A stretch of 64,000 nucleotides of DNA. It comes from Leucoraja erinacea. Its lineage: Eukaryota. The stretch covers positions 14,322,001 to 14,386,000 of the forward strand of contig NC_073408.1 of assembly GCF_028641065.1 (NCBI RefSeq). The letters are read 5' to 3'. The translations under genes and the position numbers were made by a program. Every line of letters starts with the position of its first letter. Within the stretch, counting starts at the first letter, position 1. This document shows positions 5,580 through 60,917 of the stretch, one piece after another. The notes beneath the pieces are model-generated. The model was not told the DNA's origin. It searched no databases and saw nothing but the letters and a program-made list of their open reading frames with translations.

Positions 5580-5678
5580 CTTTCCGTTGCCTCTTGCAGT
5601 TCAGACAAACGTATATTATTGCCAAAATCATGGCAGCAGTTAGGGGGATCAGGACCAGAGCATAAAGAAAAGGATAAT
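5580..5678 (-). CDS. Gene A transmembrane exon DYPFLYALVLIPLTAAMILAIIYVCLNCKRQRK
   Basis: tttcacag acceptor, AAG|GTAAAA donor, 99 nt; uncharged hydrophobic helix followed by a basic stop-transfer segment. Confidence 0.9.
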
Positions 5679-5920
5679 CTGTGAAAGAAAATTCAAGATG
5701 TCAACTAAATGTAATGTTTCAGCTCTGAGAGACATAAAAAGTTTTTAAAAAGCACTGCAATCGTTTTACTTTATTTGACAGCAGCGTACATATTTCTTTC
5801 AATTCCAGAAGAGATATACTGCCATTAATAAACAAAAATGCAGCACTCTAATGTTTAATTTTGTTAAATCTACAATGGAAAAACACTATAAAATCAAAGC
5901 ATTTGAAGATGACAACGTTA

Positions 5921-6505
5921 CATACATAGACATAGAAAATAGGTGCATTAGTAGGCCATTCAGCCTTTCGAGCCTCCGTCATTCAATATGATCATGGCTG
6001 ATCATCCAACTCAGTATCCTGTACCTGCCTTCTTCCATACCCCCTGACTCCTTTAGCCACAAGGGCCACATCTAACTCCCTCTTAAATATAGCCAATGAA
6101 CTGGCTTCAACTACATTCTGTGGTTGATAATTCCAGAGATTCACCATTGGCTGTGTTAAAAATGTTTTTCTCATCTCAGTCCTAAAAGATTTCCCCTTTA
6201 TCCTTAAACTGTGACCCCTTGTTCTGGACTTCCCCAACATCGGGAACAATCTTCCTGCATCTAGCCTATCCAACCCCTTAAGAATTTTGTAAGTTTCTAT
6301 AAGATCCCTCCTCAATCTTCTAAATTCTAGCGAGTACAAGCCAAGTCTATCCAGCCTTTCTTCATATGAAAGTCCTGACATCCCAGGAATCAGCCTGGTG
6401 AACCTTCTCTGTACTCCCTCTATGGCAAGAATGTCCTTCCTCAGATTAGGAGACCAAAACTGTACGCAATACTCCAGGTGTGGTCTCACCAAGACTCTGT
6501 ACAAC
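5921..6505 (-). mobile_element. CR1 LINE 3' fragment (only in unit 1)
   Basis: LVRPHLEYCVQFWSP...VQRRFTRLIPG...LYSLEFRR; absent from B at ~26000. Confidence 0.9.
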
Positions 6506-6664
6506 TTTAATATATATGATTTGTAAAATAAATAAAATATTACAATTGATCAATCACTAAGATCAATAAAAAAGACATTGAACTAATTAAGCTGAGGTCT
6601 AAGAATGATTCTACCTCAATGAACATTGTTAGCTGTGCACATGTATAATTACATTTCTATTTAC

Positions 6665-6982
6665 CTTTCTGTTTTGTGTTTATCGAGATACTTCTGTTTC
6701 TCCAGCCGTAGTCGTTTTTTGCCATGCACCAATACATTCCTTCATCTTTACGCTGGAAACGTGTCCATTCTTTTGAACTGTTGAACCCGACTCCAGTTTG
6801 CAACGTTACATTATGATTCTCCGTGGCATTTGTCCAGAAAACAGTAGACACCGGATTACTATCTACGCGACAATTCAGTTCCAGGAATGAATCAGCAGCA
6901 ACAAAGATGATGCTATCATTGATCAGTCGAAAAGTATCCACTGCTTTCAACCTGTATGTTATTAATAGATCTTGTGGTCCAT
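6665..6982 (-). CDS. Gene A I/C2-set Ig domain exon
   Basis: ccgttag acceptor, G|GTAAAT donor, 318 nt; motifs YGP, LNCRVDSNP, W, DEGMYWCMAKNDYG. Confidence 0.93.
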
Positions 6983-8346
6983 CTAACGGTAAAGATAATG
7001 TACACTTTATTGTAGATTAAAGCAATGTGAAAAGAATTAACATGCAAGTAGACACAGAACAGCTATTCACAATCAAACTTTGCACTTCTGAAAGCTAATC
7101 ATTCTCAAGGGACCTCAGTATAACTCGGACTGCCACTGAAGCCAAGTTGGAAAGAATCCGATACGTAACAAAAAGCTAAGATTGTTCTTGTCTATGGAGA
7201 GTGAGGGATTGATGCGGAGAGGAAAGTGAATGCTAGAGTGAATGCTAGAGCTTAATGAACCATTTGCATGATGAAAGTTGAGATTCTTCGACATTACGAC
7301 TGGAGAAATGTAGCATTGTTCGAGGGTTATACAGCTGGTAGTAGAGAAATGAAGTGTTTGGTAAACGTAGCAAATGGAGGTCCAAATTCCTAGGGAATAT
7401 TGTTGGTGTGGCCATGAATAGAGGAGTTGATATTGAAAACAAAGTTAATGTAGGACAGAGGGCTATGAACTCAAAGACCTAAGGTTAATACAGGTACATA
7501 AGACGGGCATTGAAAATAGCGAGAAGAAGATACCACTCATTGCAAAAGCTTGCAGAGAAGAATCAACTTTTGTTGGTAGAGAAAGAGAGATATGAAGTCT
7601 AAACAAGCAGAGATGCAAACGGGTGAAGTGTTACAGGAGATGGTGGTGGTGAAAGGTTTGGTGAAAGGGAGCCTAGAACCTCTGTGAGACCGTAGCCAAG
7701 AAGTTTGGAGAAGGAGCAATTAGTTATACTTGAAATACTTGAAATACTTTTATCAATGCACACACGCACAATGAGGACTTAGATGGCAAAAGTCCAATTC
7801 TAAAATAAATAGGATAGAACATGAATATGGAAGGGAGAGGGATGATGAATATTGATCCACCCTGTAAATGTCATAAACTCTGATTGCGAAGGAAGGTTAG
7901 CAGGATTAGCTTTTAAGATTGCCTCAGTGGAGATGGGGAGACACACACATAGGATTACCAAGAGATATCTATAAATAAGCTTCAAACTGAACTGAGAATG
8001 ATTCAAATCTGGGAAATAATCATCATAGTTAGAAGACAATTAGGGGCAGATTAATTAAAAGCAATTGAGAAAGGTGCATTGAAAGTTTGGGTCTGAGTAA
8101 CAGGACAAGAGAGGAAGGCAAAATAGAAGAAACCAAGAACAATACAAATGAGAGAAAATGTAAGTGATAAAACTAATGGAATGGGTCAATGAGCAGGTAA
8201 TGTAGATGCAGAAGATGTTCAGTTACACTGGTATAGATGGTGATGTACAGTGCATTTCAGTTATAACACAACGATGTGCATACAATAAGAATTCAAAGAT
8301 TAGCAATACAGTGAATACCACTTCAAAAGTTATAGATGATACTTAC

Positions 8347-8637
8347 ACATAATATTTAGTTTGATCGTATTTACAGCTGGCCGTCTAAAAATGGAATGAT
8401 TAATCTGACAACTGCAAACAGTTCCATTGTCTTCCACTCTTGGGACAATCTTGTAATGACTGGTGGCAACTAGTGTGCCATTCCTGTCTCTTTCAAAAGT
8501 TGGTGCAGTGATAATTGTAGAAGTGCATGTCCATGTAAAGGAGATATCCTTGTCGTACAATCCCTTGCCAGTGCAGGTTAGAGTGGATTCATGACCAGCA
8601 ACCAAAGTATCACTCCGTATATACATTTCTGGAAGAT
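8347..8637 (-). CDS. Gene A C1-like Ig domain exon
   Basis: tctcag acceptor, T|GTAAGT donor, 291 nt; motifs LTCTGKGLY..ISFTW, DRNGT, CQINH. Confidence 0.92.
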
Positions 8638-9013
8638 CTGAGAGAAGATAAAGCATAAAGTATTAAACTATATATCACACATTTCAATGTTAGTGAAACT
8701 TACTGACACAGTAAGTTGTCCAAAATTCTGCTCTATATTCATAGAATATATGTTAAATTAATGATGTAGAATTATAAAATAATATAGCCCTTCTTTAGCT
8801 GAGACGCATCAAGGATCAAATATATGCTGGACCATTATAATATTACTCCATGGTCCTGGCAAAATGAGATCATGTATATCCAACAGACTCACAGTCTTTT
8901 GGTTAGTATTGGCGATACTCGTAATGCACAATAATGCACAGTAAAACATTTCAGTGAGAGACTAGTGGTAACTTGAGTTAATGATAATCACTGTAGAAAG
9001 TTATGGTGTAGAA

Positions 9014-9247
9014 CAAGAGATCCCAACCTGGGATAAATTTACCCCAGAGGGTAAATTTCGCCTACCCAGGGAGTAAATTTGTTGAGTCTGGATTTTGTAC
9101 ATATTTTTTCTCATTGACTGACTGTGTTTGGTTCTGGCATACCGGTATTTGTTCATCATTAGTTGTTCATATATAAGTGAAATAACATTGTTATGTGCTA
9201 TTAAAGTTGCCAGTGGTAATCGGGATGAAAATGGTTGAGAACCCCTG
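9014..9247. mobile_element. hAT/Charlie-type miniature inverted-repeat element (MITE); paralog at 29041-29275
   Basis: Imperfect terminal inverted repeats (TIRs) CAAGAGATCCCAACC / GGTTGAGAACCCCTG; 8-bp TSD GTGTAGAA/GTGTAGGA. Confidence 0.7.
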
Positions 9248-11513
9248 GTGTAGGAGATTTATTGAATACATGCTGCTCTAAAACATACGTTAAATTTACT
9301 CTCACTTCTCAAGTTCAAAGCCCTGTAAGTGATGCACTTCAAGTGCTCATTCAGGTACATGAAATTTGGTGAAAATTTCTACTTCTTTTACCCATTCTGG
9401 TGATGAGTTCCAGTCACTGCCACTGATTAAGTGAATTTATTTGTTTAAGAATGAATTGCAGATGCTGGAAAATCAAAGGTGCACATAAATGCTGGAGAAA
9501 CTCAGCGGGTGCAGCAGCATCTAGGAGCGAAGGAAGCTTCATAGATGCTGCTGCACCCACTGAGTTTCTCCAGCATTTTTGTGTACCTCCGAGTGAATTT
9601 ATTTGTTCACAACATCAACCCAATTCTTCTACCAGCTAAATTACATCTATGCTTCTAAGTTACTCCAGGCAACAAGATCCAAGTCCTTTCTGGTTTGTGT
9701 GTTGAGACCTCACGTAATTTAATGCACTGCAATTTAATTGCTCCTCAGACTAAATTGGTGCAAACAAAGGTGACCAAGGCAGTCATATAATTTCCAACCG
9801 CTTAGCACCCTGCTCTACTCTTTTCTCACCCATAGCTATGTGGCTAAGCATAGCTCCAATGCCATCTATCAACTCAACCATTGTGGTTAGCTGAATTATG
9901 GGTGGTGATCAGTCAGTGTGCAAGAGAGAGAGATGGAACAACTGGTTGAGTGGTGCTGCAACAACAAACTCTCACTCAAGGTCAACAAAACAAAGTAGCA
10001 AACCATTGACTTTGGAACGGTGAAGTCGGGCGACAACATGCAGTTTTTAAGATTGGGTCAATGGTGGAATGAGTTAGCAACTTCAAATTCCTGGATGATA
10101 ACATCTCAGATGACCTCTCTTAAGCAGAGCACATAGCTGTAATCATGAAAAAGATCTACCACTGCCTCTACTTTGTTAGAAGTTTAAAAAGATTTGGCAG
10201 GTTATGCAACATGCAAAGAAACTTCTACTGATGTACTGTAGGAAGTATTCTGACTGGTTGCATCTTGGGCTGCTATGGAAATTTCAATGCATAGGAACTC
10301 AAGAGGCTAGACTCAGCTCAGGCAATCACAACCACAGGCCTCCCCACCTACATGCCTCAAGATGGTGGCATCTATTATCTCTCCATCCAAGCCTTGCCCT
10401 CTTCACACTGTTACCATAGGGCAAGGTATAAAAGCCTAGAGTATCACACCACCAGGTTCAGAAACCACTACTTTCCTACAACTTTTTTGAACCAACCCAC
10501 ACGACCCCAATCCTTCCACGACAATGGAACACCATGGACTTGTTTGTTTTACTTATTGTGTTTTACAGTCTTCTTCCATTTTTTAGTCTTGTAGAATTTT
10601 ATGTGATTAAATGTGATTATGTAATAAATTTACTTATAATTTATGTTTCTGTGTGCAGATTTTTGTTGCACCTATACCTCACCGTTCTTGTGCCAATGAC
10701 AATAAACAGCTTGACTTGGCTGAGCTCTGTTTCCATTAATTCTTAGTACAAGAAGTGAACTCCCCTTAAAATGTTCCCTTCCATGCACCATCCCTATCTA
10801 CCCACCATTGCTCACTCTGGGAAAGAGCTGCCAATTGCTATCCATTTCAATTTGCTTTTCCATTCCCATACTGACCTGTCATCCCTTCCTCCATTGGCAG
10901 ATTGAGATCTATCACAAACTGAATCCTAACTGAATGCAGTCAAGCAAACTATCTCAAAGAGTTATTTTTTTAACTGTTGTAAAACCAGCTCATCCTTTGG
11001 TATGGACAGAATAGAATGTGAAAAGAAAGAGAAATGGAGCAATATTGTCACTGTTGGTATTCATATACGATTTAAGATCAAATGAGACAACGCAACAGAA
11101 TCACAAGCCGTGTATTACTAAAAAAAGCTGAAAACACCAACCTTGAAGTACCTCTGTGAAACATGGAACTGCAGATTCTGGTTTACAAAAGAAAGAGTGC
11201 TGGAGTAACTCAGCGGGTCAGTCAACGTCTCAGGGGAACATGGTCTGAAGAAGGTCTAGACCAGATATGTTCTCCTGGAATGCTGCCTGACCCATTGAAT
11301 TGCTCCAGCCCTTTGTGTCGTCATATGCCTTATTAATTTAGTTGAAACGAAAAGTGTTCATGTCATCTTATTTCTAATTGGGTCTGCTTGGTATTATGTC
11401 TGTTAAAGTATCTGTAAATGGCTTGGTTCAAATGTCACTGCGTTTAACATTATTGATTTCATAAACATAAAGTGGCGAGACTGGAGATCATCATAGTATT
11501 ACAAATACTTTAC

Positions 11514-11861
11514 CATAAACCTGTATTCGTGTTCCTTGGCCCTTTTCATGAACTGGAGGGAAGACATTTGGTACCTTCACCTCACAAATGTAGTCGTAAA
11601 CAGATTGATCAAACGATACATTTTCAATCTTCAGTGATACTGTACAGTTGTTGAAACCACGCCAGAGGGGGTGAGGAATGCAGACCGAGTTGTTCGTGTT
11701 GTAAGTAACATCATCCTCTCTAGGCGATTTCCGATACCATGAAACGCGGAGCCAGGCATTCACACTTCCATTATAACTAAACGTACAGTTTAACGTGACG
11801 GACTCGCCTCTCCACACCTTGACCAGACGTGGCTGGATCAAATTTGCGATTAGCGGAACTC
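11514..11861 (-). CDS. Gene A V-set domain exon with J-like GQGTRIQV
   Basis: ttttccaccag acceptor, G|GTAAAG donor, 348 nt; motifs VTLNC, VSWYR, LKIENV, YIC, GxGT. Confidence 0.95.
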
Positions 11862-12617
11862 CTGGTGGAAAATAAATACATTTGTCAATGATACTCCCGT
11901 TAGTAGTTCAATAAACATTCACTTTACACACTGAACGAGGGATTGGTTTTCTAACGGAAACAATACTTAAAAGAAACGCATTCAAATCTGACGTTTTCAA
12001 ACAACGATTCTCGATTCCATGATGGTTGCAAATGCCTTCTCTCAGCAGATTCGGTGGCAGGTGGCACCGTGATATTTGGACGCTAGAAAAGACACAAGTG
12101 GCTGGAGTAACTCGGCGGGTCAGGAAGCATCTCAGGAGCACATGGATGAGATGATTTTTCAAAGTCTGGAAAAGGGTCCCGACCCGAAACGCCTCCTATC
12201 CATGTTCTCCTGGGATGCTGCCTGCCTGACCCGCTGAGTTGCTCCAGCACTCTGTGTCTTCACTTGCAAACCAGAATCTGCTGTTCTTCGTTTCTACACC
12301 TTCGTAAGATTCTTGCTTTGTGCTCTCTGATGGAGTTGTAGTGACCGAATTATATCTCAAATGTTTTAACTATTTGAATCTTTGCAGGCAATCGCAGTCA
12401 ATGAAGATGCAAAACTTGTATTCCAACATTAAACATATAGATTAAATGGAGACTAAATATTTTGAAGGGTTTCTCGGCCTTTGAGCAGAGATATTAATCG
12501 ACTTGCTGTTTTAATAACAGACTCGCTCCTGAACTACCTATCGATTCAATATGCCACATAATGTAGATCCTCATCACGGCTCCTTGGTCCACAGATTGTC
12601 CGATCAACATAACTTGC

Positions 12618-12666
12618 CTTGTGTTCCTGCATGCAGGATGAAAAGCAGCTTCAGGAGGAGTTGCAT
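12618..12666 (-). CDS. Gene A leader exon MQLLLKLLFILHAGTQ(G)
   Basis: ATG followed by a hydrophobic signal peptide; ends AAG|GCAAGT (GC donor, phase 1); conserved in copy B. Confidence 0.8.
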
Positions 12667-12826
12667 CTTTGCCCGGTTCTGACCGGCCCTGGAAATGTTA
12701 AACTCTCCGCCCGCGGGGTCAGCTCCAATCGTGCAAATGTTAAGTGAGGATGATCCGTCCGCTGTGAACTCGCATCGCAGACGGAGAATATCAGAGACTG
12801 TGAAATGCCAGAGGGTGTACTGAGCA

Positions 12827-12866
12827 GAGGAAGTTACGTTCGAGCCGAAGGAAGTTTTCACTTTCC
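12827..12866 (-). promoter_or_regulatory. ETS/PU.1-like (GAGGAAGT, AAGGAAGT) and ISRE/IRF-like (GGAAAGTGAAAAC) motif cluster upstream of gene A
   Basis: 160-200 bp upstream of the ATG; identical in B (32321-32360). Also TATAAAAG on minus at ~13030 and CAGGAAGTG at ~13110. Confidence 0.45.
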
Positions 12867-15800
12867 CTAGATTAATATCACTGCCTTTGTTCAAGCAAAC
12901 ACTGAGGATCTGTGTCAATGAAATCCACAGAGTGCGTGTTGGAAGAGAACGGAATCAAAAACAATGTCACAGCATCTAAAACAGCTACCCCAGTCAATGC
13001 GCCGTCAGAGGGACTTCAGTGCCTTTTATAATTCGCTGCAGCAAGGTTGTCTTACTTCAAATACGTTTCTTTCACCCATTGAAGCATTTTGATAAAGTTT
13101 AACTCTCACTTCCTGCACTGGCACTACTGAAAAATGTTTTTTCCGCCCTTGTTCAACCTATAGCACATAGGTTTAAAGTGAAGGGGGAGTTAATAGGAAT
13201 CTGACGGGCAACTTTTTTTACACAATGACAAAAATGAGAGAAAAGGGAGCACAGGATTACCTGAAATTGCAGCACATGTATGAATCTGTTTTTCATTGTT
13301 CATACTAAATTGTAGATTACCCAGATGAGATCTGAAGTGCTGTTCTTCCAATCTGGATTAGACCTCACCATGGTCATGCGAAGGCCTAGGACAGACTGGT
13401 CAGTGTGAGTAGGAAGGGGAGATGAAAGGTCTGGCAAATGGGAAGACAGAATAGCCATTAGGGACAGAGCACTTCCACGAGGCAGCTGCTTGATCTACAG
13501 CTGGTCTCGCCGATGTAGAGGAGATCACATCAGGAATACAAATTGAGTAGACAAAGTTGTAGCAGATTGTGAATCTACATCTGACCTGGAAATACTGTTT
13601 AGGTCACTGGATGGTAGTGAGGACATAGGTGTAGGAACAAGTGTAGCATCTCTTACAGTTGCAGTAGAAAGAGCTAGGGGGGCAGGGAGAGGTGGGTGGG
13701 AATGTATAAGTGAATTAGTGAGTGGCAGAGGGAAAGCAGGAAGAGATGGGGTGGGGAAGATGTGACTGCTGGTGGGATCCCATCGCAGCTGGTGGCAAGG
13801 TAAAGACCAAGGGAATAGTATCTTTGTTAAATGGAGGAAATGTGAACGGGAGGTCCATCGACCACAGCAGAGGAGAAATCACATTTTGTGGAGGACATTT
13901 GAGATGTTATAGAGTCATAGGGTCATACAGCATGGAAACAGGCCCATTGGCCCACCTTGCCAACATGTCCCAGCTACACTAGTCCCTCCTGTCTGCTTTT
14001 GGTCCATATCCCACTAAACCTGTCCTATCCACATACCTGTTTAAATGTTTCTTAAACACTGCAAGAGATAGTACCTGCCTCAATTACCTCCTCTGGCAGC
14101 TCGTTCCATGCACCCTCCACCCTATCAGGTTCCTATTAAGCCTTTCCCCTTAAACCTTATTACCTTAAACCTATGATGAAAATAACTTTACCAGAGCCTG
14201 TGTTCTGGAAAGGAAAGTCTCTTCTTGAGAGTAGATGCAACAGAAAAGGTGACACTGAGAGAAAGGGAAAGAGAGGTGGACTTACAGCACTGTGGTGCTG
14301 GCTCGAAGGACCAAATGACCTCGACTTGCACCTATTTTCTTTGTTTACAAGAGACCATGTGGGAGGAAGTCTTGTCAAGATCATTGTGCGAGTCAGTTGG
14401 ACTATGTTAAATGTCAGTAGATTGTTAGTCTCCTGAGACAGTGACAGAGAGATACAGAAAAAGGGAGAGATGCAAGAAATGGCCCAACTGAATTTTAGAT
14501 TCATAGATAGAAGATCATAGTGAAGGTGATAAACAGAGGCATTAAACTGTTTACTTGATTTTGACTCTACTCTTCTGTATTATATTCTGTGGTCAGATTG
14601 TGAATTAACCTCTTATATGGCATATGTGGAACTGCCCTGCATCTGTACACGGCCATATCATAACCAGACCTATTGGCACAGTAGATGCCGTTCCTATCTT
14701 TTCTACCAGTGCGCCACCTTGTGCATAAATTTAACATAGCAGTTACATGCTTAAAATACATTTGGTTTGGTGCATTAAATGTAATATAACATGGGTATAA
14801 TGATAAAATATAATGTAAGTTGGCACAGATTTGGTGGGTCAAAGTGTCTGTTTTCACGCTGAATCTCTCCATTACGGTGACTACCTTTTGCACCCTATTT
14901 GGTGAAAAATCTAGGCCTTTCCCAGTGGTGATCAGTTGTGAGAAATCAATGTACTCAAGTACGATGGCTCATGTGATAAATTGGCCCATTATTTGGTTGT
15001 CTTCTCTCACTGCTTTGCAGATGAAGAAGAAAGGCATTTATGTGGAGAAGCTAGATAGTCAGCAAGTAAGAACAATTCTACTTTGGAAAAATAAGGGTAT
15101 CAAGCAAGAACCAATTACTTTGTTGAGGTAGCTAAAGTAAATACTATTTAAGAATTTAAGAAATAATTTAAGACTAAGGGCATTTAGAATGGAGACGCCG
15201 AAACACTTTTTCTCACAGAGAGTTGTGAGTCTGTGGAATTCTCTGCCTCAGAGGGCGGTGGAGGCCGGTTCTCTGGATACTTTCAAGAGAGAGCTAGATA
15301 GGGCTCTTAAAGATCAACCAACTTCCAACAATCAACCAACTTCCAAATTCGCAAGTGTGTCGGATAATCAGACTTTTACTTAGCTCCATATTTGTAGTTT
15401 TCTTACTTTCAGAAAAACTGTTGCTACAGTTGCTGCAGTTATCTGCACTTTGATTTATGTACTGAATCCTAGTGTAGTTCTTGCACCATCTGCTGGTCAA
15501 ATATAAAACTGGATGTAGTTCAGAGAAGATTTACGAGGATGTCTGTGAAATTCTCTGCTTTAGGCAGAGGCAGGTTCTCTGGATGTTTTCAAGAGAGAGC
15601 TAGATAGGGCTCTTAAAAATAGTGGAGTCAGGGGATATGGGGAGTAGGCAGGAACGTGGTACTGATTGGGGATGATCGGCCATGATCACATTGAATGGCG
15701 GTGCTGGCTCGAAGGGCTGAATGGCCTACTCCTGCACCTATTGTCTATTGTCTGTTGTCTTGATGTTGCTGGGACTTGAGCTAAAGGGAGATGCTATTTA

Positions 15801-17099
15801 TTTTTATTTTTTATATGACTGTAAGGGTAAGAGAATGTCGTTGTCTCTTAATTGAAGACAATGACAATAAATTCAAATCAAAACAAGGCTGGACAGGCTG
15901 GAACTTTATTCCTTGGAGCGTATGAGGATGATGGATGCTGTGATAGATGTATATACGATCATGTGGGGAATAGATAGCGTAAATGGACAGGATATTTTAC
16001 CCACAGTAGGGGAATCAAGAGCCAGTGGACATATGTATAAAGTGAGAGAGAAAAGATTTTAACAGGAACCCGAGAGGCTACTTATTCACACACAGGGTAG
16101 TGAGTTTCTGGAAGAAGCTGCCAGAGGAGGTAGTTGAAGCAGGTACGACAAAAGTATTTGAAAGACATTTGGACAGGTACATGGTTGAAAAGGTTCAGAG
16201 GGATATGGGCCAACATGGGCAGGTGGGACCAGTAAAGGTGGGTCATCTTGCTCGGCATGGGCCAGTTGAGGTGACGGGCCTATTTCTGTGCTGTATGACT
16301 CCACGGCTCTAGAAATAATGCAAACTTAGCAAACTCGCCCGTTATTGAGTTTAAGTTGAGAAAGAAATAGCCATAAACCTCCTTATATGGGCCTGGACTG
16401 TTTGTAATGGCAAAATGTTTCTTTAATAATGTTGGATTTGAGAAGGTTGTCCAAAGCATTGATAAATAAATTCCTCATTTGTCTTTATTTTATTGCCTCA
16501 GAAAATTGGTAACAAAATCAACTGGACATACGCACATGTAAGAGCTCTCCATGTAAGAGCTATCATTGGAAATAATTCTACCTAAATCGGACCCTTACAA
16601 ATGCATCAGTAATGAAGCCATTGCCTGAGATGTGCGACTGTGGATTATCTTACTATTCTATCCACGTCTGCTGTGGGAGGCCAACCTCCTGTGCAAATAT
16701 GGAAATAGGTTTGATTTTGGGTCACCTTCTTGTCGTCTCGGACAGTTCCAGAGTTGGTGGGCGATGATCTCAGGCAGGGTGTGTGCCTGATGAGAAGCAT
16801 TTCATTCTTACATCGTAACAATTGGGGCAATGGATTCTGCATGATAACTCTAATTTTTTGCTAGATGGAGGGGAACTACAATTCTTTACTCAAGTCCAGC
16901 ATTTAATTAGAATTTACACATAATATCTGCAATGGGAACGTAAAAATCAATGATAGCAATACATAATTGCTGGCCAACTACATGATTCAGTCTTTATAAA
17001 ACCGCGAGCCATTCTACATTTTCCTCATGGTATCAAAAGTTATTGCTGTGCACGTTTGGCGATATTTTATGTAAACCACATGTAATATTTGAAGAATCA

Positions 17100-19723: not shown

Positions 19724-19861
19724 NNNNNNNNNNNNNNNNNNNNNNNNNNNNNNNNNNNNNNNNNNNNNNNNNNNNNNNNNNNNNNNNNNNNNNNNNNNNN
19801 NNNNNNNNNNNNNNNNNNNNNNNNNNNNNNNNNNNNNNNNNNNNNNNNNNNNNNNNNNNNN
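19724..19861. other. Assembly gap (138 N)
   Basis: Run of n. Confidence 1.
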
Positions 19862-21708: not shown

Positions 21709-21790
21709 TCCGCGAGCATTGCCAATTTCATTTCACTGCACATCTCGTATGTGTATGTGACAAATAAACTTGACTTGACTTGACTTGACT
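21709..21790 (+). mobile_element. Very short 3'-end retro-insertion (same end as the element at 63545-63627), only in unit 2
   Basis: CCGCGAGCATTGCC...AATAAA(CTTGA)n. Confidence 0.7.
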
Positions 21791-21905
21791 AAAAACCATG
21801 TGGGATTTTAATACTCAGCTATTTTTTAATGTGATTTTCAATGAGTATCATCATTATTAGTGTAGAAATGAGCCTTGTTTTTTCAGTGCAAAATGGGTAA
21901 TTGTA

Positions 21906-30617: not shown

Positions 30618-30667
30618 CTGGTGGAAAATAAATACATTTGTCAATGATACTCCCGTTAGTAGTTCAA

Positions 30668-47719: not shown

Positions 47720-48077
47720 TGGCGGCTGAGCCGCTGAAGGAGTGCCTAGAGATGAGAGGGAAATGAGCAGCAAACGTGCAATGTCAAGCACGGGATCTGG
47801 GGGCTATGCGTGATGTGCTTTTTATGGTTGCAATATGACTGAGGGTAGGGGAAAGGAGAGGGAGGGAAAGGTGAGGGAGGGTTGGGGGGACGGGATTTTG
47901 GGGGAACGGTGAGTGGTGCGCAGGTTGGGGGCTATGAGTGAGTGGTGCAATTTGTGTTGGGGGGCGGGATGCATTGGGGTAACGGGTGAGTGGTGGAATA
48001 TTGCATTGGGGAACATGTTATTTTGGGGGACCAGGCCTCCCATGTAACAGGTACCAAACAGGTCCCGCTTAGTCTAG
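47720..48077 (+). mobile_element. Helitron-like 3' end fragment
   Basis: G-rich body, degenerate subterminal hairpin, ends CTTAGTCTAG. Confidence 0.35.
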
Positions 48078-48784
48078 GTATTAAAATACAACTCTCAAAT
48101 ATTCAGATTGCCTTATAGTTCAATATTTGTTTAGGTTACTTTTATATTCAGTTATGTAATGAATACTCTATACCTCATTTCATGCATCCCTATTCAATAT
48201 TCCAAATAATTAAAAATGGCTTCATTTCAATAAATGTTCATCAAAAATTAATAATCCAATAAAATAAAAATACACCATAAATTAAAAAAATGCACAATCA
48301 TATATATTTTAAAAATAATTGATGCAATGGGAAGCCAATGTTAAACTTAGGCCCTCTACTCCCATCTGCTTTCATCTGCTCATCATCTGCCCCTCCCCTG
48401 GATCCATTTGCACATTCTCTGCTCCCCATCTGGTTCTACGGGTTGCCAACTAATCCCCATCCCATTCTCCCACATCCAACTACATACTGGTTATCTTTTC
48501 CAATCCCCCCAACGTCCTGTTGCATGGACTCACCCAAAACATATAATACCTTCAGCCTCCCGACATTCTGCTTGACCCACTGAGTTCTTCCAGCATTCTG
48601 TTTTTGTCTCCAGTTCAGCATTGCTTTTAGTCTAGTTTTGTTTAGTTTAGAGATACAGTTTGGAAACAGGCCCTTTGGCCCACCAAGTTCACGCTGATCA
48701 ATGATCCCCTGGTGTTGTTTAAAGTGAGCTTCCGTGGGACTATTAATGGATGTAAAAATAACAAATTTATTTATGTTCCATCAG

Positions 48785-49132
48785 GAGTTCCGTTGATCAC
48801 AGAGTTGACCCAGCCACGTCTGGTCAGTGTGTGGCGGAGCCAATCCGTCACGTTAAACTGTACATTTACCTATAATGCAAGTGTGAATGCCTGGCTCCGT
48901 GTTTCCTGGTATCGGACATCGCCTGAAGGGGCTGATGCTACTTACAAAATGGACAACTTGCTCTGCATTCCTCACCCCCTCTGGGATGGTTTCAACAACT
49001 GTACGGTATCACTGAAGATTGAAAATGTATCGTTTGGTCACTCTGTTTACGATTACATTTGTGAGGTGAAGTTACCAAATGTCTTCCCTCCAATTCATGA
49101 AAAGGGCCAAGGAACAAGAATACAGGTTTATG
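48785..49132 (+). CDS. Gene C V-set (VJ-type) exon
   Basis: ccatcag acceptor, G|GTAAAG donor; 93/116 amino acids identical to gene A V. Confidence 0.95.
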
Positions 49133-51388
49133 GTAAAGTATTTCCAATACTATGATAATCTCCAGTCTCTGCACTCTATACAGGTTTATGATAAAGTATT
49201 TATATAATTCTGCAGAAATGCAGTTCCTATAGTATATATATTGATTATACTTACATATCATACCACATTTAGATACATTGACATAGATTAATAACACACA
49301 CCATGGGAAGTCAGGCTAATTAATTGTAATTCATTCCAACCAAGAAGAATAATAAGTAATTTACCAATGTTGATTGTGGAATTTTCAGTCAAATGTAGTC
49401 TGTGCAGTTATGTAGCCAAGGCAAAGGGATCATAAAATAAAGTTGGGGAAAGGTAGAAACATTGAGCAGTATAGGTTACAACTGTGTTAAGAGAAACAAT
49501 TAAAGTTTATTTTTCCACAAATTCTGCCTGAGAGCTTGCAATAGTTTTTATTTTCAACTCAGATCTCCAGCATCTGCAGTTTTAATGCAAAGAATCATAG
49601 GTTAGGTATGAAGACTATCACTGAAATTAATTTTGTGCGTCTTTCATTGTTATTATCTGCTCCAAGTGTTGGCAGGATGGATACAATGGGTTTAGAGGGT
49701 TAATGGCCAGGCGCAGGCAGGTGGTACGAGTGTAGATGGGGAATATAGGTTAGCGTGGGCAAGTTGGGCCGAAGGGCCTGTTTCCATGCTGTATGACTCT
49801 ATTAGCTGGTTTTACAATTGTTAAAATATTCCAAATATTTGGATTGCCTATACTTCAATACATGTTTAGGTTAAATTTATATTCAGTAATCTACTTGATA
49901 ATTTAGTAGTTTGTATGTTAGATACCTATGTGCACTTACACTTAGGTTGTAAGCTGCAGGCAAATGGGTCTAGATCCTAATCCTAACATTGTGGGGAATG
50001 GGTATGGTGGGCCAAAGGGCTTATTTCCATTCTGTACAGCACTATAACTCTATAACCACCTCCAAAATTCTCCGTCATCACTGCTTAATCTACAAAGTTT
50101 GAAAGATTATTACCATGGTCTTTACATTTTTCTCTTCTCTTTGGCGGATTATTCTCTCTCTCCTGCAATGCACTGACCCCCTTCATCAATACTGCCACGT
50201 CCCTTCTTGTCTTCCCTTCCCCATCCTTCTGCAGTATCTTCATCCAAGAATGTTACACTTTCTTTTTGGACATATCTCTGGTTTTCTTGTCACATTCTAA
50301 TCCTGGGTGTTCAGTTGGTCTTTCAGGTCACCAACAATTGTTAAATCCATATCTGATGTTAAATGCAGCTCTGTTTAACCTGTTCACTGCCAATTTTTTT
50401 TTCACTTTTGGCCAATGACCCAAGTATACTCGGGGGTGGCACTAAACAGGTTAAATGTGTAACGTACTCTGTCTATTCCTGCGTAACAACTCTCTATTAT
50501 TTGTTCTGGAAAAATGGATCACTGTCAATTTGTTCTGCTTCCTATAGAGATCCCGACAATTATTCCTTCCTTGACCCTAACTCTACTCCCCCTCTCCTGA
50601 ACAGTTGACCGACCCAGGACGTAAAGGATCTTGGCTCTGTTTGCTTCTCCCCTCAGTACACACAACTGAATGGTGAATAGGGTAAGATGTCCTGAGAGGT
50701 CAAGGCCCGAAATGTCACCTGTACCTTCTCCAGAGATGCTGTCTGACCCACTGAGTTACCCCAGCTTTTTGTGTCTATCTTCAGTTTAAACCAGCATTTG
50801 CAGTTCTACATTTGCTACATATGCCCTGAGAGGTCTTTGGCTTAATATCGATAATATCAAAAACAAAAGAGCAATCCAACCAAGACCTCAACAGTGGAAC
50901 AGGCGGAGAATGATGGCTGTCCTTTGTGGAGTGTCACAACGGCTGGGAAGGTGGATGAAGGCTGCAGTAGGAAAGGGTCTCCGGTCATCTTAGATTCCAT
51001 GCCACTGGATCCTGACCCAGATCTGTCAAGGACTGTGGGGTGGCTGTCTGTGCACCAGCCTCCCCACGTTAAACAAAGTCACGCACAGGTGTCCTCCATA
51101 TAGGGAATAACATTCTGGAGACACCCATAGTCAGCCATGACCGAAGGGGGCCTAAGCAGAGTAGGTCATGCAAACTTTGTCAACATTTATCCAAGTTAAC
51201 AATTAACAATACAATTTATAACACTCATGGGAATACCTTTGTGTGGGTCTACAAGACATTGGTTATCACCAGGAAAAAATAATATTTCTGATTCACATTT
51301 ACTGAAGTGGAATTGTTGTTAACATTAAAGATAGACACACAATGCTGATGTAACACAATGGGACAGGCAGCATCTCTGGAGAGAAGGA

Positions 51389-51428
51389 ATGGGTGATGTT
51401 TCAGGTCAAGACCCTTCTTCAGACCTAT
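51389..51428 (-). ncRNA. Minimal type-I hammerhead-ribozyme-like motif in a Penelope-type short repeat
   Basis: ATAGGT-CTGAAGA-A-GGGTC-TT-GACCT-GAAA-CA-TC-ACCCAT; similar motifs at 3640-3670, ~45976-46012 and 58202-58231. Confidence 0.5.
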
Positions 51429-51529
51429 ATAGATTGTGGATAAATGCTAACTAACATGCTTTGTTCTTTTTATTTAGCATGTAAGTATATAGCACAACAT
51501 ATAACTTTGTTTCATGTTATTTGTTCCAG

Positions 51530-51856
51530 TCCCAGAATCTACACCAAAAATTCTAATGACTCAGGGAGATTTAATAGCAGAGAAAGCATCTGTTTTGTAC
51601 TGCCATGCATGGGGATTTTATCCTGAGAACATCACAATGCAATGGCAACATCCTCACAAAACTCAAGCTACAAAATCAGATGTTATTATTACCACAAAAC
51701 TCTCCCCTTCCAGGAACTCTGATGGCACATTTAATGCAACAAGTCAAATTAGTTTTACTCCCACCTTGCAAGACCACAGGACAGTCTGTACTTGTCAGGT
51801 TCTTCATACAACAAGCAAAGAGTGGATAATGCAACACATAACACTCAACGTTAATT
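51530..51856 (+). CDS. Gene C C1-set exon
   Basis: ttccag acceptor (alternative in-frame acceptor at 51536), T|GTAAGT donor; canonical C1 motifs LYCHAWGFYPENITMQW, NSDGTF, CQVLH. Confidence 0.93.
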
Positions 51857-53238
51857 GTAAGTATGTTCATTTTATGCTCTTTCATTACAATTTACAATTA
51901 CGTACCATGGATCTACCCGACGTGGGCTAAGTTCTAAGTATTTAACTTTTAGCCTTTTAAATAACTAGGTAATGTCAGAAATGGATACATCAGTAAACTG
52001 TCCTCTCACCTTGATGTTTCAGTCTCAAATTGACTGTGGTGAAGGTCTTCTTGATCTTGTAGTCTTATTCAATTTGGCCAGGATGTGGTGTAAATGAAGT
52101 GGTTCTCTCAAAATCCAAACTAAGCACTAGGGTGTAGGCTACAAGTGAGCACGTTCCACTGGATAACAATGCCAACATTGCTTTTCATGGACATTGCTGA
52201 TGATTGAGAGTTAACAGTCTATATTTAATTGACTTTTTGAATGGGACCTGCCTGGTGAGTAATCCATGCTGATAGCTATGCAATGTTGTAAATGTACCGA
52301 AACAGCATGGCTGGAGACAATGGGATAGAACATCACCCAATGAGGCATGTTGTCTCTCCTATTGATTCCTGTGAAGATTTATAGCCCGTGGATCACATTG
52401 CAAACACTTCTAATTGGTAACAAATTTCAACAATGCTTTTCTCAATCTCAATTGTTGAGTTAGCTGGAACATAGTGGACATTTCTAGCTATCCATTTTAG
52501 CAAGGGTCTAGAGGAGAGATAAAACATTTGTAAGTGATAATTACAGTGATTTAGGAATGCAGAAAGATTGAAGAAGATGGAATTTTACCAAGTTGAATGG
52601 AGAAAGTCAAGGAAGTTAATCCATAAAACTACAGATGTTGAAACCTGAAACATGAACCAAAATGTTAGAAGAACTCACCCAGTCCAGATGAAAGAGAAAT
52701 AATAATTTGATTCATTGACCCTTCCTTGGAAATGGAGAGGCTGGAGAGAGTTTAGTTTAGTTTTGTTTAGAAATACAGTATGGAAACAGGCCCTTCGACC
52801 CACCAAGTCCGCGCCTACCAGCTATTCCCACACATTAACACTATGCTACACACATTAGGGACAGTTTACATATATATAATTTACATTTATACCAAGCCAA
52901 CCTACAAATCTGTACATCTTTGGAGCGTGGGAGGAAACGGAAGATCTCGGAGAAAACCCACGCAGGTCACGGGGAGGACGTACAAATTCAGTATAGAGCA
53001 CGCTATGTCAGGATCTAACCTGGATCTCTGCCATTGTAAGGCAGCAACACGACTGCTGCAGTAACTCTACTGGAGTGCAGGGTTTACAGTTTTCAAAGCA
53101 GAGCTGGAGGGAGGAATAAGAGCCAAGACAATGGAGATAATTTAAGACAGATCAGATATTAAGGAGCATGACTGTTCAAATAAGCTGTTTGTGAAAGGAA
53201 CATAAGGACACATTAGGAGATCAGTATCTGAAGTTGGA

Positions 53239-53751
53239 AAACATAGAAACATAGAAAATAGGTGCAGGAGAAGGCCATTCGGCCCTTCGAGCCAGCACTG
53301 CCATTCAATATGATCATGGTTGATCATCCAACTCAGGATCCTGCACCTGCCTTCTCTCCATACCCCCTGATCCCTTTAGCCACAAGGGCCACATCTAACT
53401 CCCTCTTAAATATAGCCAATGAACTGGCATCAACTACCTTCTGTGGCAGAGAATTCGAGAGATTCACCACTCTCTGCGTGAAAAATGTTTTTCTCATCTC
53501 GGTCCTAAAAGATTTCCCCCTTATCCTTAAACTGTGACCCCTTGTTCTGGACTTCCCCAACATCGGGATCAATCTACCTGCATCTAGCCTGTCCAACCCC
53601 TTAAGAATTTTGTAAGTTTCTATAAGATCCCCCCTCAATCTTCTAAATTCGAGCGAGTACAAACCGAGTCTATCCAGTCTTTCTTCACATGAAAGTCCTG
53701 ACATCCCAGGAATCAGTCTGGTGAACCTTCTCTGTACTCCCTCTATGGCAA
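53239..53751 (-). mobile_element. CR1 LINE 3' fragment
   Basis: IEGVQRRFTRLIPGMSGLS...RTRGHSLRI...; near-identical family to 5921-6505. Confidence 0.9.
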
Positions 53752-55046
53752 TAATGCGTAATATTAATTCCGGAAGATTGCAAAAGTACCTCAACAGATG
53801 ATAAGATGTTGTTCTAGTTTATGTTGGGCATCACTACTGGGAGTGGAGCGGCCACTGATGCACAGGTCAGAATAGAAGTAGAATTGAGAAATAAATTGGG
53901 AAATACTAGGAAGCTGGGGATCACTACTAGACCTAGGTGCAGGTGCTCATCAAAACTACCATTATATCTGCATTTGTTTCCTCCATGTAGTGGAGACCAA
54001 ATTGAGATAATCATATCCAGTACATTACATTGGACAAAGCCTCATCTGCCTCTTAATGAGTAATTCTCTTGATTAATGAATGGTTTTGAAAGGGAAAATT
54101 GAGAAAGGTTATTGGCCAAAAGTTAACCTGCACATTGCTAAAATCTAACAGGGATGTTCAAATGACACAAACTCACACAGTACTGTATACAATTGCACTT
54201 CTTATCAGTCAACTATTGCTTGCATCTTAAGCAGGTCTCCTTCCTCACCACCACTGATCCAGTTCAACAGAACCATCGAATAATCTTGAAAAACTTTCAG
54301 GGGCTAACTTTCTGCCTCTTTCTTTTTTATTTTTTATATTTGCCAGTTTTTCTGATCTTACTATCTATTTTTACTTTTTCCTCTTCTCATTGTTTTCTTT
54401 TTCTTGTCTTGCCTTTTAACATTGGTTCTGGATTACGGTATTACCACCCATTAGGTTCCACTGTACTGTTTTGTACTGTATTAACTTCTAATAAATAAAA
54501 TAATTTAAAAAAAAAACAAAAAAAAAAAACTATTAAGCTTGCAGCCTTCCTCACCACCACTGATCCAAACAAACCATCAAATCTTGAACTTTCATGGCAA
54601 CTCTTTGATTAATTGCCAGTCTGATTTGCATTTACTTCTCATGGCCTTTGTTGGTTCTGAAGCCACCCATTAGGCCAAATGGTGTAGGAAAAGTATAACC
54701 GTGAATTCAATGTCATGCCATTGGGGTGTAAGCTACCCAAGCAGAACATTAGGTGCTGTTCTTTCACTTAGTACGTGGCCTCACTCTTGTGATGGAGGAA
54801 TGTATGGGCAAAATCTGGACTCTTGTTTTATGCCAACACTGGAGTAATTGGCCAAATAACCTCCACAATTTTATGAAACATTCAGTACTGTTAATCAAAA
54901 TGGTATTTCAAATATGCAAAATCTATTTTAAATAACAGGCTAAAAATGAGGCGCAAATAACAAAGGGGTGACAGGTGGTACTTTCGAAGCTTTGTTGAAG
55001 CTGCCCTTGTGACTAATGCCGTTTCTTTTTCACTGTTCTGATTGAG

Positions 55047-55367
55047 ATGGTCCACAGCCAGCAATACATTACAGGAATTCTATTGCGCATCAATTGCAGC
55101 CTCTGCTCCAAGACATCATCTATGTTGAACCTCAGTCGTATCTTCAACTAAATTGTACCACGGACAGTAATCCAATATCCACGGTCATCTGGATGAAATC
55201 GGGAGAGCAAACTGAAAGGATACAATTGACTATTGGATTAAGTCATTCAAATCTGCAGAAAGAGAAGATCGATGATTCCTTCAATGGAAAGTATATCTGC
55301 AGAGCTTACAATTCATATGGCGCCAAAGAATCTTCTGTGAGAGTATACGTGACATCAGATTGGAAAA
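55047..55367 (+). CDS. Gene C I/C2-set exon
   Basis: YGPQ...LNCTTDSNP...W...GKYICRAYNSYG; A|GTAAGT donor; acceptor at the homologous position is an unusual GAG. Confidence 0.85.
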
Positions 55368-57990: not shown

Positions 57991-58068
57991 GTCATTTCCC
58001 TGTCCGATTTGTAACGGTGCCCATCTTCGTGACGACTGTGATTTTGTTACTGCTCTGCTGCAGGAAAG
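57991..58068 (+). CDS. Gene C TM exon SHFPVRFVTVPIFVTTVILLLLCCRK
   Basis: ttgtcttacag acceptor, AAG|GTAAAT donor, phase 1-1, hydrophobic. Confidence 0.88.
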
Positions 58069-59151
58069 GTAAATTAACTGGTAACCAAACTAATGTGAAG
58101 CAGAAGTTTTAATAGCTGTTAACATTCACCACTTAGGTAGACACAAAATGCTGGAGTAACTTGGCGGGACAGGCAGCATCTCTGGAGAGAATGAATGGAT
58201 AACATTTCAGGTCGAGACCCTTCTTCAGACTGTTCATCAGCATTTTATGTCTCCAGAGATGCTGCCTGTCCCGCTGAGCTACTCCAGTATTTTGTGTATA
58301 CCTACGATTTAAATCAGCATCTGCAGTTATTTCATACCATTCCCTGCTTGATGTGATTATTTATTTAAGTAAAATAATTTGGAATGACAAAATAATTCAA
58401 GGTACGATACCTATGGAATAAAGTATTCCTGCGATGGTGAGCACCATTATTATAGTTGAATAGAGTGTGGCAACATGCAATACTCAGAGAGATGGCCCTA
58501 CAAAAATGATGGATGAGCATTCTACTCAGTGTAGAACAGTTGTCAAATTAAGTGATAATTTGAAAGGTTGATGGTAAAATTAAATATTAATCATGCAGAA
58601 AGTTGCAGATAATGGGCTGATTTTTGAAATGCAGAGATTTAAACTAGAAAATTATGATTGAAAGAAGGAAATTGAAATCAACAAGCTGATCTTGCATGAC
58701 ATTGAAAAGTCACTAAGAGGAAGGATTCTTAAATGGAATTTCCCTGGTGAAAATTTGGAACAATCAGCAAGGTTATACAAATAGCAGCAGTCAGCAGGAT
58801 TGTGAAGGTGAAGGATTCTGGTGTGTTATTGCATCACTGTAAACAAAAAGCACCACACATGTACTTGTCCAAATGCATTTTATAGCAACATTTCAAAAAC
58901 ATTTGAACAGGTAAAGAGGTTGGAAATGTTTAGAGGAATCTGGGCCAGGCAATTGGGACTACCTTGATGGGACATCTTGGTCAGCATTGATAGGTCGGGC
59001 TGAAGAGCCTGTTTCCATGTTTTACGACTATCAATAAATGTGTCAAAGCATTGAATAAAACAAATGTTCTATATAATGAAAATCAGATTCCAGATGAAAA
59101 AAATGACGTATGGGAGAATTTCCCTAATAATATGTCCTTTTTATTGTATAG

Positions 59152-59176
59152 ATCGGGACTGCTTGTGCAAATGGAG
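59152..59176 (+). CDS. Gene C cytoplasmic mini-exon DRDCLCKW(R)
   Basis: tttttattgtatag acceptor and strong GAG|GTAAGC donor; open in phase 1->2. Confidence 0.65.
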
Positions 59177-60817
59177 GTAAGCCTTAAAATAGCATTTTAT
59201 CCTTTTTATATAAATGATGGATGAACAATTTTTCTCCAATAATATGCATTAAGTAGTAAGCAAGTTTTCAACAGCAAGGAGGTAATCTGCAATGTGGATT
59301 TGAGGAACTCAGACTCAGGCTACAGTGAAAAGCTAACTAGTGAGCAGAAAGACAATACATGATTACTATCAAGCCATCCACAGTGTATAGATACACAATA
59401 AGGTGAATAAGGTTTAGTGTAAGACAAAATGCTTTTAACAGCAGGTTTTGGCTGAACCACAGGTGAGAGAAGCCCATGGGGCTGGACAGAGAACATTGCA
59501 ACAGCCCCATCTGAAAATAAAAAAGATTCAGATGAGAGATTTGTCAGATCACGGGCTAAGGTCAGCAGCGGCAGGTGCAAATAGCGAGTAATTATTTTAC
59601 GGCCTTGATGATGGACAGCAGATGGAATTCAGAAAATGTACCAAAAGTTGCAAGCATTCACATTCACACAAGCTGCACATTACACAAGAACACATGCAGG
59701 CCATTGGTCCCTTGCACCAGTTCAACTCTTCAATACGATCATTGACTTGATCTTTTATCTCAATACAACTTTCCTGCATATCCCTTATTATCCCCAAAAT
59801 CTCCCCATCTCTCTCTCAACTGGCTGAGCCTCCACCCAGGTAAGAATTCCAAAGACCTCTATCCTCAAGGTGAAGGAATTTCTTCTCCTTCCTGTCCAGA
59901 AAGGTGACCTCTTTATTGTGGTTCAGAACATGCTCGTCTTGGGAAACATCATCCTCACTTTCCCATGATAATAACTTTTAAATTCCTCATGATAATAGGT
60001 TTTCTTTTCAGAAGTTCCTCAATGCATTGGTATCACAATGCAGGGTTATGGTATGATGCAGGCATACTAGGAAAAAAAAGTTGTTACGGACTTGTGGGGC
60101 CGAGAGTTTCCGTGCTGTAATTGTTATATGGTTATATGGTTATAGGTATAGGCCCAGTCTGCTTAATGTCTCCTCATGACAATGCCACCATTCCATGAAT
60201 CAATTACTCTCCCTTCATCACGCAAATCCTTTCTTGGATTGGGAAACCAGACCAGTACATAATATTTCAGATGCAGTCCCACCAGACTCGTATGCAATTG
60301 GAACCAAATGTGTCTAATCTGGTTGTACTCAGATTCCCTTGCAATTAAAGCATTTTGTAATTGCATTTAACTTCCGATGTTTCATTTATATACACATCCG
60401 GGTCATGCTGAGAAAACTGGAGGTAAACTGGGAGTAACATGGCCAGATGTGCATAGCAGATAAAAAGAATGATAAAATGGAGATAAACTGGATATCTTCA
60501 CAGTGTCCAAAATTGATCCTGAGGAATCACTTGAAAGAAGTTTCAGAAGATAAATCATAGAATATGGGCTTGCCTTTGTCATTCTTTATAGTTGAAAATG
60601 CATTAAACTTTGAGTAAAATTTGCTTGTACTGATGTTCAAATTGGTAAATAACCTAAAAAAGTAAATGGATTGTGTGGAGTGACAGAGTGGGTTGTGTTT
60701 GAGGAAGAAGCTGAGAATAATCACTGGATTTATATTCCTGGGTGCTTCTTAATTGAGAATCACAGAATAATTTTGGAACTTATTCCTCACAACTTTGCTA
60801 TTTTTCTTTCTCATTAG

Positions 60818-60917
60818 GAACTCAAAGCAACACAGGAACCAACGCCGATTGGCCAAAAGTGACTCTTCGGAAAATGTTAACAGCCAAAAAGAGATCATAG
60901 CTATTTCTGAATTCTGA
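60818..60917 (+). CDS. Candidate terminal exon of gene C: RNSKQHRNQRRLAKSDSSENVNSQKEIIAISEF*
   Basis: Long polypyrimidine tract ending tcattag; open in phase 2; hydrophilic; AATAAA motifs downstream (~61452-61568). Confidence 0.5.

Follow-up and report, generated by a model that had tools for sequence, protein, structure and literature searches.

The window analysed here, a 64,000-nucleotide stretch of the little skate Leucoraja erinacea genome (contig NC_073408.1, positions 14,322,001 to 14,386,000 of the forward strand), contains a cluster of three immunoglobulin (Ig) superfamily genes, A and B on the minus strand and C on the plus strand. The three genes have one exon order in common: a germline-joined VJ V-set domain, a C1-set domain, an I-set domain and a transmembrane (TM) segment. 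Taken together, our data make it probable that the cluster belongs to an old, unnamed family of non-rearranging VJ-C1-I receptors of fishes, SIRP-like in design and organised as paired receptors. An earlier note on this DNA had proposed a paired-receptor organisation, and the structure of the cluster bears this out. The genes are clustered, their V domains are 80-87% identical while the stalks of A/B and C are only 30-35% identical, and they end in three different ways: an A-type tail with immunoreceptor tyrosine-based switch and inhibitory motifs (ITSM and ITIM), a tail-less TM, and a conserved C-type Arg-containing TM with its own tail. Only the V domain has been homogenised.

Gene structures and signalling ends

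Splice sites, phases and reading frames were derived from the DNA, and the joined frames were checked by script. Exons of the window were searched singly; full-length and fold analyses used family proteins from databases. Pfam assigned the nine large Ig exons to V-set, C1-set and I-set/Ig_3, in this order in all three genes, and all Ig exons are in phase 1. The outer ends of the region described are exon ends, the A TM exon at 5580 and the C stop codon at 60917. The genes had been called intact-looking, which held for their exons, splice sites and frames, but the tail exons of A lie outside the window and C has no detectable leader.

Gene A begins with a leader exon at 12618-12666 on the minus strand (MQLLLKLLFILHAGTQ plus one base), which is followed by a GC-AG intron with the donor GCAAGT. 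Its VJ exon lies at 11514-11861 (Pfam V-set, 41.8 bits), its C1-set exon at 8347-8637 (Pfam C1-set, 29 bits; C2-set_2 reached 17 bits, below its cutoff), its I-set exon at 6665-6982 (Pfam Ig_3, 37 bits; I-set, 25.7 bits) and its TM exon (DYPFLYALVLIPLTAAMILAIIYVCLNCKRQRK) at 5580-5678. All exons from 12618-12666 to 5580-5678 are open, and the TM exon, placed like the leader by splice and frame analysis, exits in phase 1 and encodes the uncharged TM that the earlier note had described. The V exon ends in a J-like G-Q-G-T-R-I-Q-V with the splice donor immediately after it. Since the J-like strand lies within the V exon and runs directly into the donor, the V domain is germline-joined; the V exons of the cluster end in ..GQGTRIQVY, then the donor. 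The best PDB matches of the A VJ exon were Ig lambda V domains, and the A C1 exon matched IgA/IgG constant domains, B7-H6 and SIRP-gamma.

Sensitive tblastn detected no cytoplasmic tail exons of A within the 64-kb window. However, the A TM exon is 100% identical to residues 336-368 of a RefSeq protein, XP_055516779 (P0079), and to the TM of a transcript contig (P0111), and both of these run from the A-type TM into an ITSM/ITIM tail. The tail motifs are one ITSM (T-I-Y-A-V-V) and two ITIMs (V-S-Y-A-D-I and S-E-Y-S-V-V), and all three recur in 12 elasmobranch species. Two contigs from public run assemblies, P0111 (515 aa on 2326 nt) and P0112 (441 aa on 1866 nt), encode A/B-type ectodomains, A-like TMs and this same tail. 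With 515 aa on a 2326-nt contig, P0111 is spliced, and the two spliced contigs thus establish that the A-type message is real, including its GC-AG leader intron. The leader-to-V junction HAGTQ-G-VPLI was seen in both P0079 and P0111. The GC donor (G/GCAAGT) is present in the leader introns of both A and B, at 12616-12617 and 32112-32113, respectively. Both contigs are A/B mosaics, a state that may stem from alleles, conversion or assembly.

The only RefSeq protein of the locus, P0079 (490 aa, named Siglec-13), is a hybrid. From the leader through V, C1 and I it is 100% identical to gene B, the TM is 100% identical to that encoded by the gene A exon, and the tail, of 122 residues, has no counterpart in the window. 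The model joins the B ectodomain exons to the A TM exon some 20 kb away and bypasses both the stop-bearing TM exon of B and the ectodomain exons of A. It is either a mis-built model from near-identical paralogs or a product of real read-through splicing.

Gene B, also on the minus strand, has a leader exon with the GC donor at 32114-32162 (splice and frame analysis), a VJ exon at 30270-30617, a C1-set exon at 28373-28663 and an I-set exon at 26169-26486 (Pfam with splice and frame analysis for all three). Its TM exon, at 25670-25768, was placed by gapless alignment to A and contains an in-frame TAA at 25677-25679, where A has CAA. This codon falls four codons past the TM, in agreement with the claim that B stops right after its TM, and the predicted protein ends in ..IIYFCLFRNR with a four-residue tail. 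The last 26 nt of the exon contain 9 substitutions relative to A, and the boundary of the duplication that produced B (1226/21034) precedes any tail exon. An Amblyraja B-type model (P0108) likewise stops just past the TM, and an A-like gene of Rhinoraja has a short tail; compared at the sequence level, these genes suggest that tail-less copies have been retained in skates.

Past the donor of the B TM exon, homology to A ends in a G-rich, low-complexity stretch of about 360 bp (25300-25665; proline-rich on the other strand), and the extra tail of the short-tailed Rhinoraja paralog (ENSVGVELEGPKIQ) may represent read-through into a similar G-rich stretch. The V exon of B also differs from those of A and C at exon residue 16 (30570-30572), where it encodes Cys in place of Trp (VKVCRGES vs VKVWRGES), which leaves strand A' of the domain with an unpaired cysteine.

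Gene C lies head-to-head with B, within 17 kb. On the plus strand we located its VJ exon at 48785-49132 (Pfam V-set), its C1-set exon at 51530-51856 (Pfam C1-set, 46 bits; canonical ..YCHAWGFYPENITMQW.. and ..CTCQVLH..), its I-set exon at 55047-55367 (Pfam I-set, 34 bits), its TM exon at 57991-58068 (SHFPVRFVTVPIFVTTVILLLLCCRK, starting with HFPVRFVTVPIF..), a 25-nt cytoplasmic mini-exon at 59152-59176 and a last exon at 60818-60917 (..NSKQHRNQRRLAKSDSSENVNSQKEIIAISEF, then the stop). These six exons have consensus splice sites and form an open frame of 400 codons to a TGA. In the PDB, the C1 exon matched shark UrIg2 best, followed by Ig CL, B7-H6, MHC-I alpha3 and SIRP-gamma; the I exon matched titin, DSCAM, ROBO and MAG. 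The TM exon, supported by a motif in orthologs, encodes an Arg three residues from its start and then a run of 18 hydrophobic residues. The tail has no tyrosine and ends in ISEF, an instance of a conserved C-terminal S/T-E-F/L. Exon and frame analysis thus upheld what the earlier note had said of C, namely its opposite strand, its head-to-head position, its TM-edge Arg and its Tyr-free tail. The tail frame proposed there was also reached, but only by way of the mini-exon, which encodes DRDCLCKW, takes the frame from phase 1 to phase 2 and has counterparts in orthologs (DRCFLCNR, DRYGPCNC and GWCGPCNS).

Similarity searches and scans for signal peptides and donors yielded no leader exon for C, only a dead relic at 47034-47098 on the plus strand. 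This is a degenerate A/B-type 5' untranslated region and leader in which ATG has become ATT, the hydrophobic core is lost and no donor is left. We also mapped RNA reads on 46001-52000 of the window from four runs (X11, X15, X16 and X18) whose tissue is not known and of which 5-25% each was read. Depth on the V and C1 exons of C was about zero, and every placed read was a partial repeat match, which is only weak evidence against expression. Hundreds of partial reads fell on 46001-46200, 46800-47400, 47600-47800, 49600-49800, 50600-50800 and 51200-51600. They came from both strands and all four runs with many inverted joints, as is typical of abundant transcribed interspersed repeats and not of gene C. 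As to transcripts, then, spliced A-type contigs were found, but no reads on the C V and C1 exons in these four runs.

Discordant histories of the V exon and the stalk

When compared with 1.8 billion representative proteins, the V exon of A gave six strong matches, all from elasmobranchs, and weaker ones from paddlefish and bonefish. Searches with full-length matches identified relatives in about 15 sharks and rays and in Polyodon, Albula, Anguilla and Conger, so that the family is not, as had been supposed, one of cartilaginous fish only. These proteins carry automatic names such as Siglec-8, -10, -11, -12, -13 and -14, sialoadhesin-like and MAG-like, and also syg-2-like, VCAM1-like and SIRP-alpha-like (PTPNS1-like). 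The C1 and I domains of C, its Arg-TM and its tail ending in S/T-E-F/L are also present in C-type orthologs from Pristiophorus, Hemitrygon, Hemiscyllium and S. torazame. Pristiophorus, Hemitrygon, S. torazame and Polyodon have kept the TM motif PVR..T.P.FV, which in the paddlefish protein reads P-V-R-x-V-T-x-P-x-F-V and is followed by a short tail. Two shark A-type paralogs, P0082 (Heptranchias) and P0083 (Pristiophorus), have a mid-TM Arg (..IFVIRFIAVAAF..) and tails of 6-9 residues; they represent a second, independent activating-type partner in the family that is absent from the skate window.

The V domains of the cluster are of one type, as had been noted, with amino acid identities of 87% between A and B and 80-82% between either of them and C. 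In contrast, the C1 and I domains of A/B and C are those with 30-35% identity. At the DNA level, C can be aligned with A/B only over about 420 bp that include the V exon (48761-49179; 88-89% identity). Trees of C1 and I contained separate A-type and C-type clades, each with sharks and rays, and the split between the two types is therefore older than the shark-ray divergence. The V tree followed lineage instead, with skate C beside skate A/B and Rhinoraja A, and sawshark C among the shark A-types. Approximately unbiased (AU) tests, for which the groups were named after inspection of a quick tree, rejected a C-type V clade (p = 6e-6) and also rejected a grouping of the skate C C1 domain with skate A-type C1 domains (p = 5e-45). 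To judge from these sequences, the pattern points to a V exon that has been overwritten between partners by exon-limited conversion or concerted evolution, a hallmark of paired receptors. The same pattern has been described for SIRP, KIR, Siglec-5/14 and CEACAM1/3 in the paired-receptor literature (PMC3533184, PMC5112662).

In the arrangement that we propose, A would be the inhibitory member, its V domain binding the ligand and its tail being encoded to the left of the window. Once phosphorylated, the ITSM and ITIMs of A would recruit SHP-type phosphatases. B would be a partial tandem copy of A made without the tail exons, and it may be a signalling-dead or decoy form like SIRP-gamma or an alternative ectodomain cassette spliced to the TM and tail exons of A. 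C would be an anciently diverged paralog acting as the counter-receptor, with its own C1, I, TM and tail and with a V domain overwritten from the A/B type. Its edge Arg may pair with an acidic residue of an FcR-gamma/DAP12-kind adaptor with an immunoreceptor tyrosine-based activation motif, and an edge Arg followed by 18 hydrophobic residues resembles what is found in FcR-gamma-coupled receptors. The conserved, Cys-rich C tail ending in S/T-E-F/L may add lipidation or PDZ-type anchoring. The partners would share a ligand and be expressed in immune cells.

Several observations weigh against this arrangement. The stop codon of B could signal decay, and the missing leader and reads of C could mean that C is silent or recently disabled in L. 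erinacea. Given the hybrid P0079 and the mosaic contigs, the tail may be borne by the ectodomain of A or by that of B. The Arg of C is found right at the TM border, where it might do no more than snorkel. The C-type tails, conserved and 42-45 residues in length, would also be out of the ordinary for an activating receptor that simply couples to an adaptor. The V exons of A and B differ by 15 nonsynonymous and 2 synonymous changes, most of which fall in the C'-C'' and F-G loop regions; the ratio is 2.3, as opposed to 0.6 in C1 and 0.4 in I, but this excess is not significant alone (Fisher p = 0.38). Finally, Foldseek against the PDB and an Atlas search tied SIRP, nectin, Necl, MAG and CD22.

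Relation to SIRPs and other receptor families

The best matches differed by domain, which agrees with the earlier expectation that no single known protein would be the ortholog. The V domain matched Ig lambda V; the C1 domain matched UrIg2, Ig C, B7-H6, MHC and SIRP; and the I domain matched titin, DSCAM and MAG, i.e., generic I-sets. The second domain scored 29-46 bits as Pfam C1-set (cutoff 21) and 17-19 bits as C2-set_2, below its cutoff of 21, and the third was I-set/Ig_3 with no Pfam C1-set match. A canonical ..C..W..YxC.. pattern and an extra Cys pair were invariant in the family alignment. The full-length family profile was swamped by multi-I-set proteins when run against the PDB. An AlphaFold model of the whole ectodomain had a mean predicted local distance difference test score (pLDDT) of 69.6, with domains at 80-92.

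We consider it unlikely, though it deserves serious attention, that the genes are true fish orthologs of the SIRPs (equivalents of alpha, beta and gamma) in which the third domain was swapped for an I-set and the ligand is CD47-like. Past their own family, C-type proteins have SIRP-alpha (E = 1e-10) and SIRP-beta (E = 1e-8) as their best named matches, the family profile aligns without interruption to SIRP-alpha V-C1 (103 bits), and the paddlefish member was automatically named SIRP-alpha-like. Both families place a true C1-set domain beneath a V domain that has a J-like G-x-G motif. Both also combine an ITIM-type tyrosine member, a tail-less member and a basic-TM member with a short or no signalling tail, parallel to SIRP-alpha, -gamma and -beta, while the V domains are kept alike. 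The tail motifs x-Y-A-D-I/L and S-E-Y-x-S-V resemble those of SIRP-alpha. However, the profile scores of Ig light chains and UrIg2 are close to that of SIRP, the V exon by itself is nearer to Ig lambda V than to SIRP V, and identity is 24% to pig SIRP-alpha over V and part of C1 and about 24-28% to SIRPs as a whole. In a C1 tree with two or three SIRP sequences, only the paddlefish row adjoined SIRP, with weak support. The basic residue of C is an Arg at the outer TM edge in place of the mid-TM Lys of SIRP, the C-type has its own conserved Cys-rich tail, and the membrane-proximal domain is I-set where that of SIRP is C1. Because the third domain is not C1, we file the cluster, on sequence features, as SIRP-like in design and not as a SIRP ortholog. 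The claim of a layout unlike that of SIRP is thus sound for the third domain, but the SIRPs are still the nearest named kin.

That the layout differs from that of UrIg was corroborated by the single C1 domain followed by an I-set. UrIg and UrIg2 resemble the cluster in being non-rearranging elasmobranch genes with a single-exon VJ, a split leader and C1-set domains; unlike it, they carry between three and eleven C1 domains, lack an I-set, an ITIM tail and paired partners, and are linked to the MHC or an antigen-receptor complex (PMC12227049). As non-rearranging VJ genes of sharks, the 2025 UrIg2 paper names UrIg, UrIg2 and NCR3 and no others (PMC12227049). NITR, KIR, LILR, paired Siglecs and CEACAM1/3 likewise place similar ectodomains on ITIM tails or charged TMs, expand in clusters and homogenise the ligand-binding exon between inhibitory and activating members (PMC3533184, PMC5112662). 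NITRs, however, have V and I domains without a C1, and the other paired Ig superfamily families lack a VJ-C1 core. PRARP is reported to have a single V domain with an ITIM. A survey of the CD28 family lists CD79, NITR, SIRP, CD8, NKp30 and PRARP, and no description of a VJ-C1-I family was found in the literature searched. The earlier suggestion that the family may be undescribed is correct in this sense, but RefSeq models of it exist in many species under Siglec, MAG and SIRP-like names.

An alternative about as unlikely as SIRP orthology is that only A works in the little skate and that B and C are decaying copies without functional pairing. The TAA of B and the 9 substitutions around it, the dead leader relic of C for which no substitute leader was found, the near-zero depth on the C V and C1 exons in the four RNA runs, and the failure of our searches to turn up an L. 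erinacea protein model for C would all fit such decay. On the other hand, C keeps its six consensus-spliced exons and 400 open codons, its TM and tail have been conserved in lineages that parted before sharks and rays did, and dN/dS (the ratio of nonsynonymous to synonymous substitution rates) of its V exon is 0.5-0.6 relative to A/B. The receptors of Amblyraja and Rhinoraja that are also truncated just past the TM argue for retention. The RNA runs are of unknown tissue and only partly read, and no elasmobranch C-type model has a leader, so this exon may be hard to predict.

We regard it as very unlikely that the proteins are nectin/CADM-type adhesion molecules and not immune receptors. Nectins and Necls have the same three-domain layout of V, C1-like and I domains, Foldseek and Atlas matches included nectin-1, -3 and -4 and Necl-4/CADM1 with TM-scores of up to 0.65, the C-type tails have PDZ-ligand-like ends (S/T-E-F/L), and C was without reads in the four RNA runs. 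However, neither a nectin nor a CADM was among the best sequence matches of any domain, domain 2 is above the cutoff as C1-set and below it as the CD80-like C2-set_2, and ITSM/ITIM tails, basic-TM partners, lineage-specific homogenisation of V and a fast-changing V are traits of receptor families and not of conserved adhesion molecules. The resemblance to nectins and CADMs is limited to the general shape of three Ig domains.

Least credible of all is the reading in the RefSeq names, that these are Siglecs, sialic-acid-binding inhibitory lectins: the automatic names (Siglec-12, -13 and -14, sialoadhesin-like and MAG-like), the alignment of MAG and Siglec-8 over profile domains 2-3, the top Foldseek match (MAG Ig1-3) and the ITIM tails speak for it, but the likeness is limited to a generic membrane-proximal I-set/C2-type domain and the tail. 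The V domain instead belongs to the antigen-receptor (VJ) type, has canonical B-F cysteines (..LNC.. and ..YDYIC..) in place of the B-E disulfide of Siglecs, an extra pair and a J-like G-x-G-T end, lacks an arginine on strand F within a Y-x-F-R type of context, and is followed by a C1-set and not a C2-set domain, and the Ig_CD22-type Pfam families recorded for mammalian Siglecs in the same tables were not recorded for this family.

Locus duplication and the place of the family

Genes A and B are tandem copies, about 95% identical. By self-comparison, the first duplication unit (1226-16614) contains A without tail exons and the second (21034-36086) contains B, and the two are 86-97% identical piece by piece. 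The 4.4-kb spacer between them is rich in long interspersed nuclear elements (LINEs), with reverse-transcriptase fragments, and includes an assembly gap, an N run at 19724-19861 flanked by GA-rich low complexity. This run lies about 7 kb from the A leader and 5.8 kb from the B TM exon, outside every exon, and frame continuity across it is therefore no issue for either gene; it is intronic solely in the hybrid P0079 model. Open reading frames (ORFs) listed across it are stretches of X. Sensitive tblastn and model alignment over the window revealed no family exon adjoining the run, although a short exon may sit hidden within it.

A LINE fragment at 5921-6504 (minus strand) in the I-to-TM intron of A is absent from B and was therefore inserted after the duplication. 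It is one of four copies of a LINE-type 3' fragment, the others lying at 21904-22463, 53241-53756 and 34659-34956, with an ORF that reads ..LVRPHLEYCVQFWSP... At the right edge of the window, 62141-63981 holds retroelement remains with a reverse transcriptase (RVT_1, E = 1e-14). An ORF there also matches Pfam ALKBH8_N, probably a transposon-derived motif and not a host gene.

A broader statement, which we advance tentatively and at somewhat less than an even chance, is that the cluster belongs to an undescribed, gnathostome-wide sister family of the SIRPs, present in sharks, rays, paddlefish and basal teleosts. Such a family would carry a non-rearranging VJ-C1 antigen-receptor-like core on an I-set stalk and would have been maintained for more than 250 million years as a pair of inhibitory and Arg-TM forms, with the V exon alone repeatedly copied between them. 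Its C-type module (edge Arg, Cys-rich juxtamembrane segment and S/T-E-F/L end) would be without a described counterpart.

For annotation, the family means that dozens of shark and ray RefSeq entries called Siglec, MAG or sialoadhesin are misnamed, and that the little skate model fuses two neighbours. The cluster also offers a clean natural case of exon-limited gene conversion that keeps inhibitory and Arg-TM partners matched. Accounts of how antibodies and T-cell receptors arose invoke as raw material non-rearranging receptors in which a VJ-type V is joined to a true C1 domain, and the only such receptors of cartilaginous fish named in the literature searched are UrIg, UrIg2 and NKp30. To these, the family described here adds a VJ-C1 lineage that is membrane-bound, widespread and equipped with clear signalling ends, and in which SIRP-type checkpoints may have their deep ancestry.

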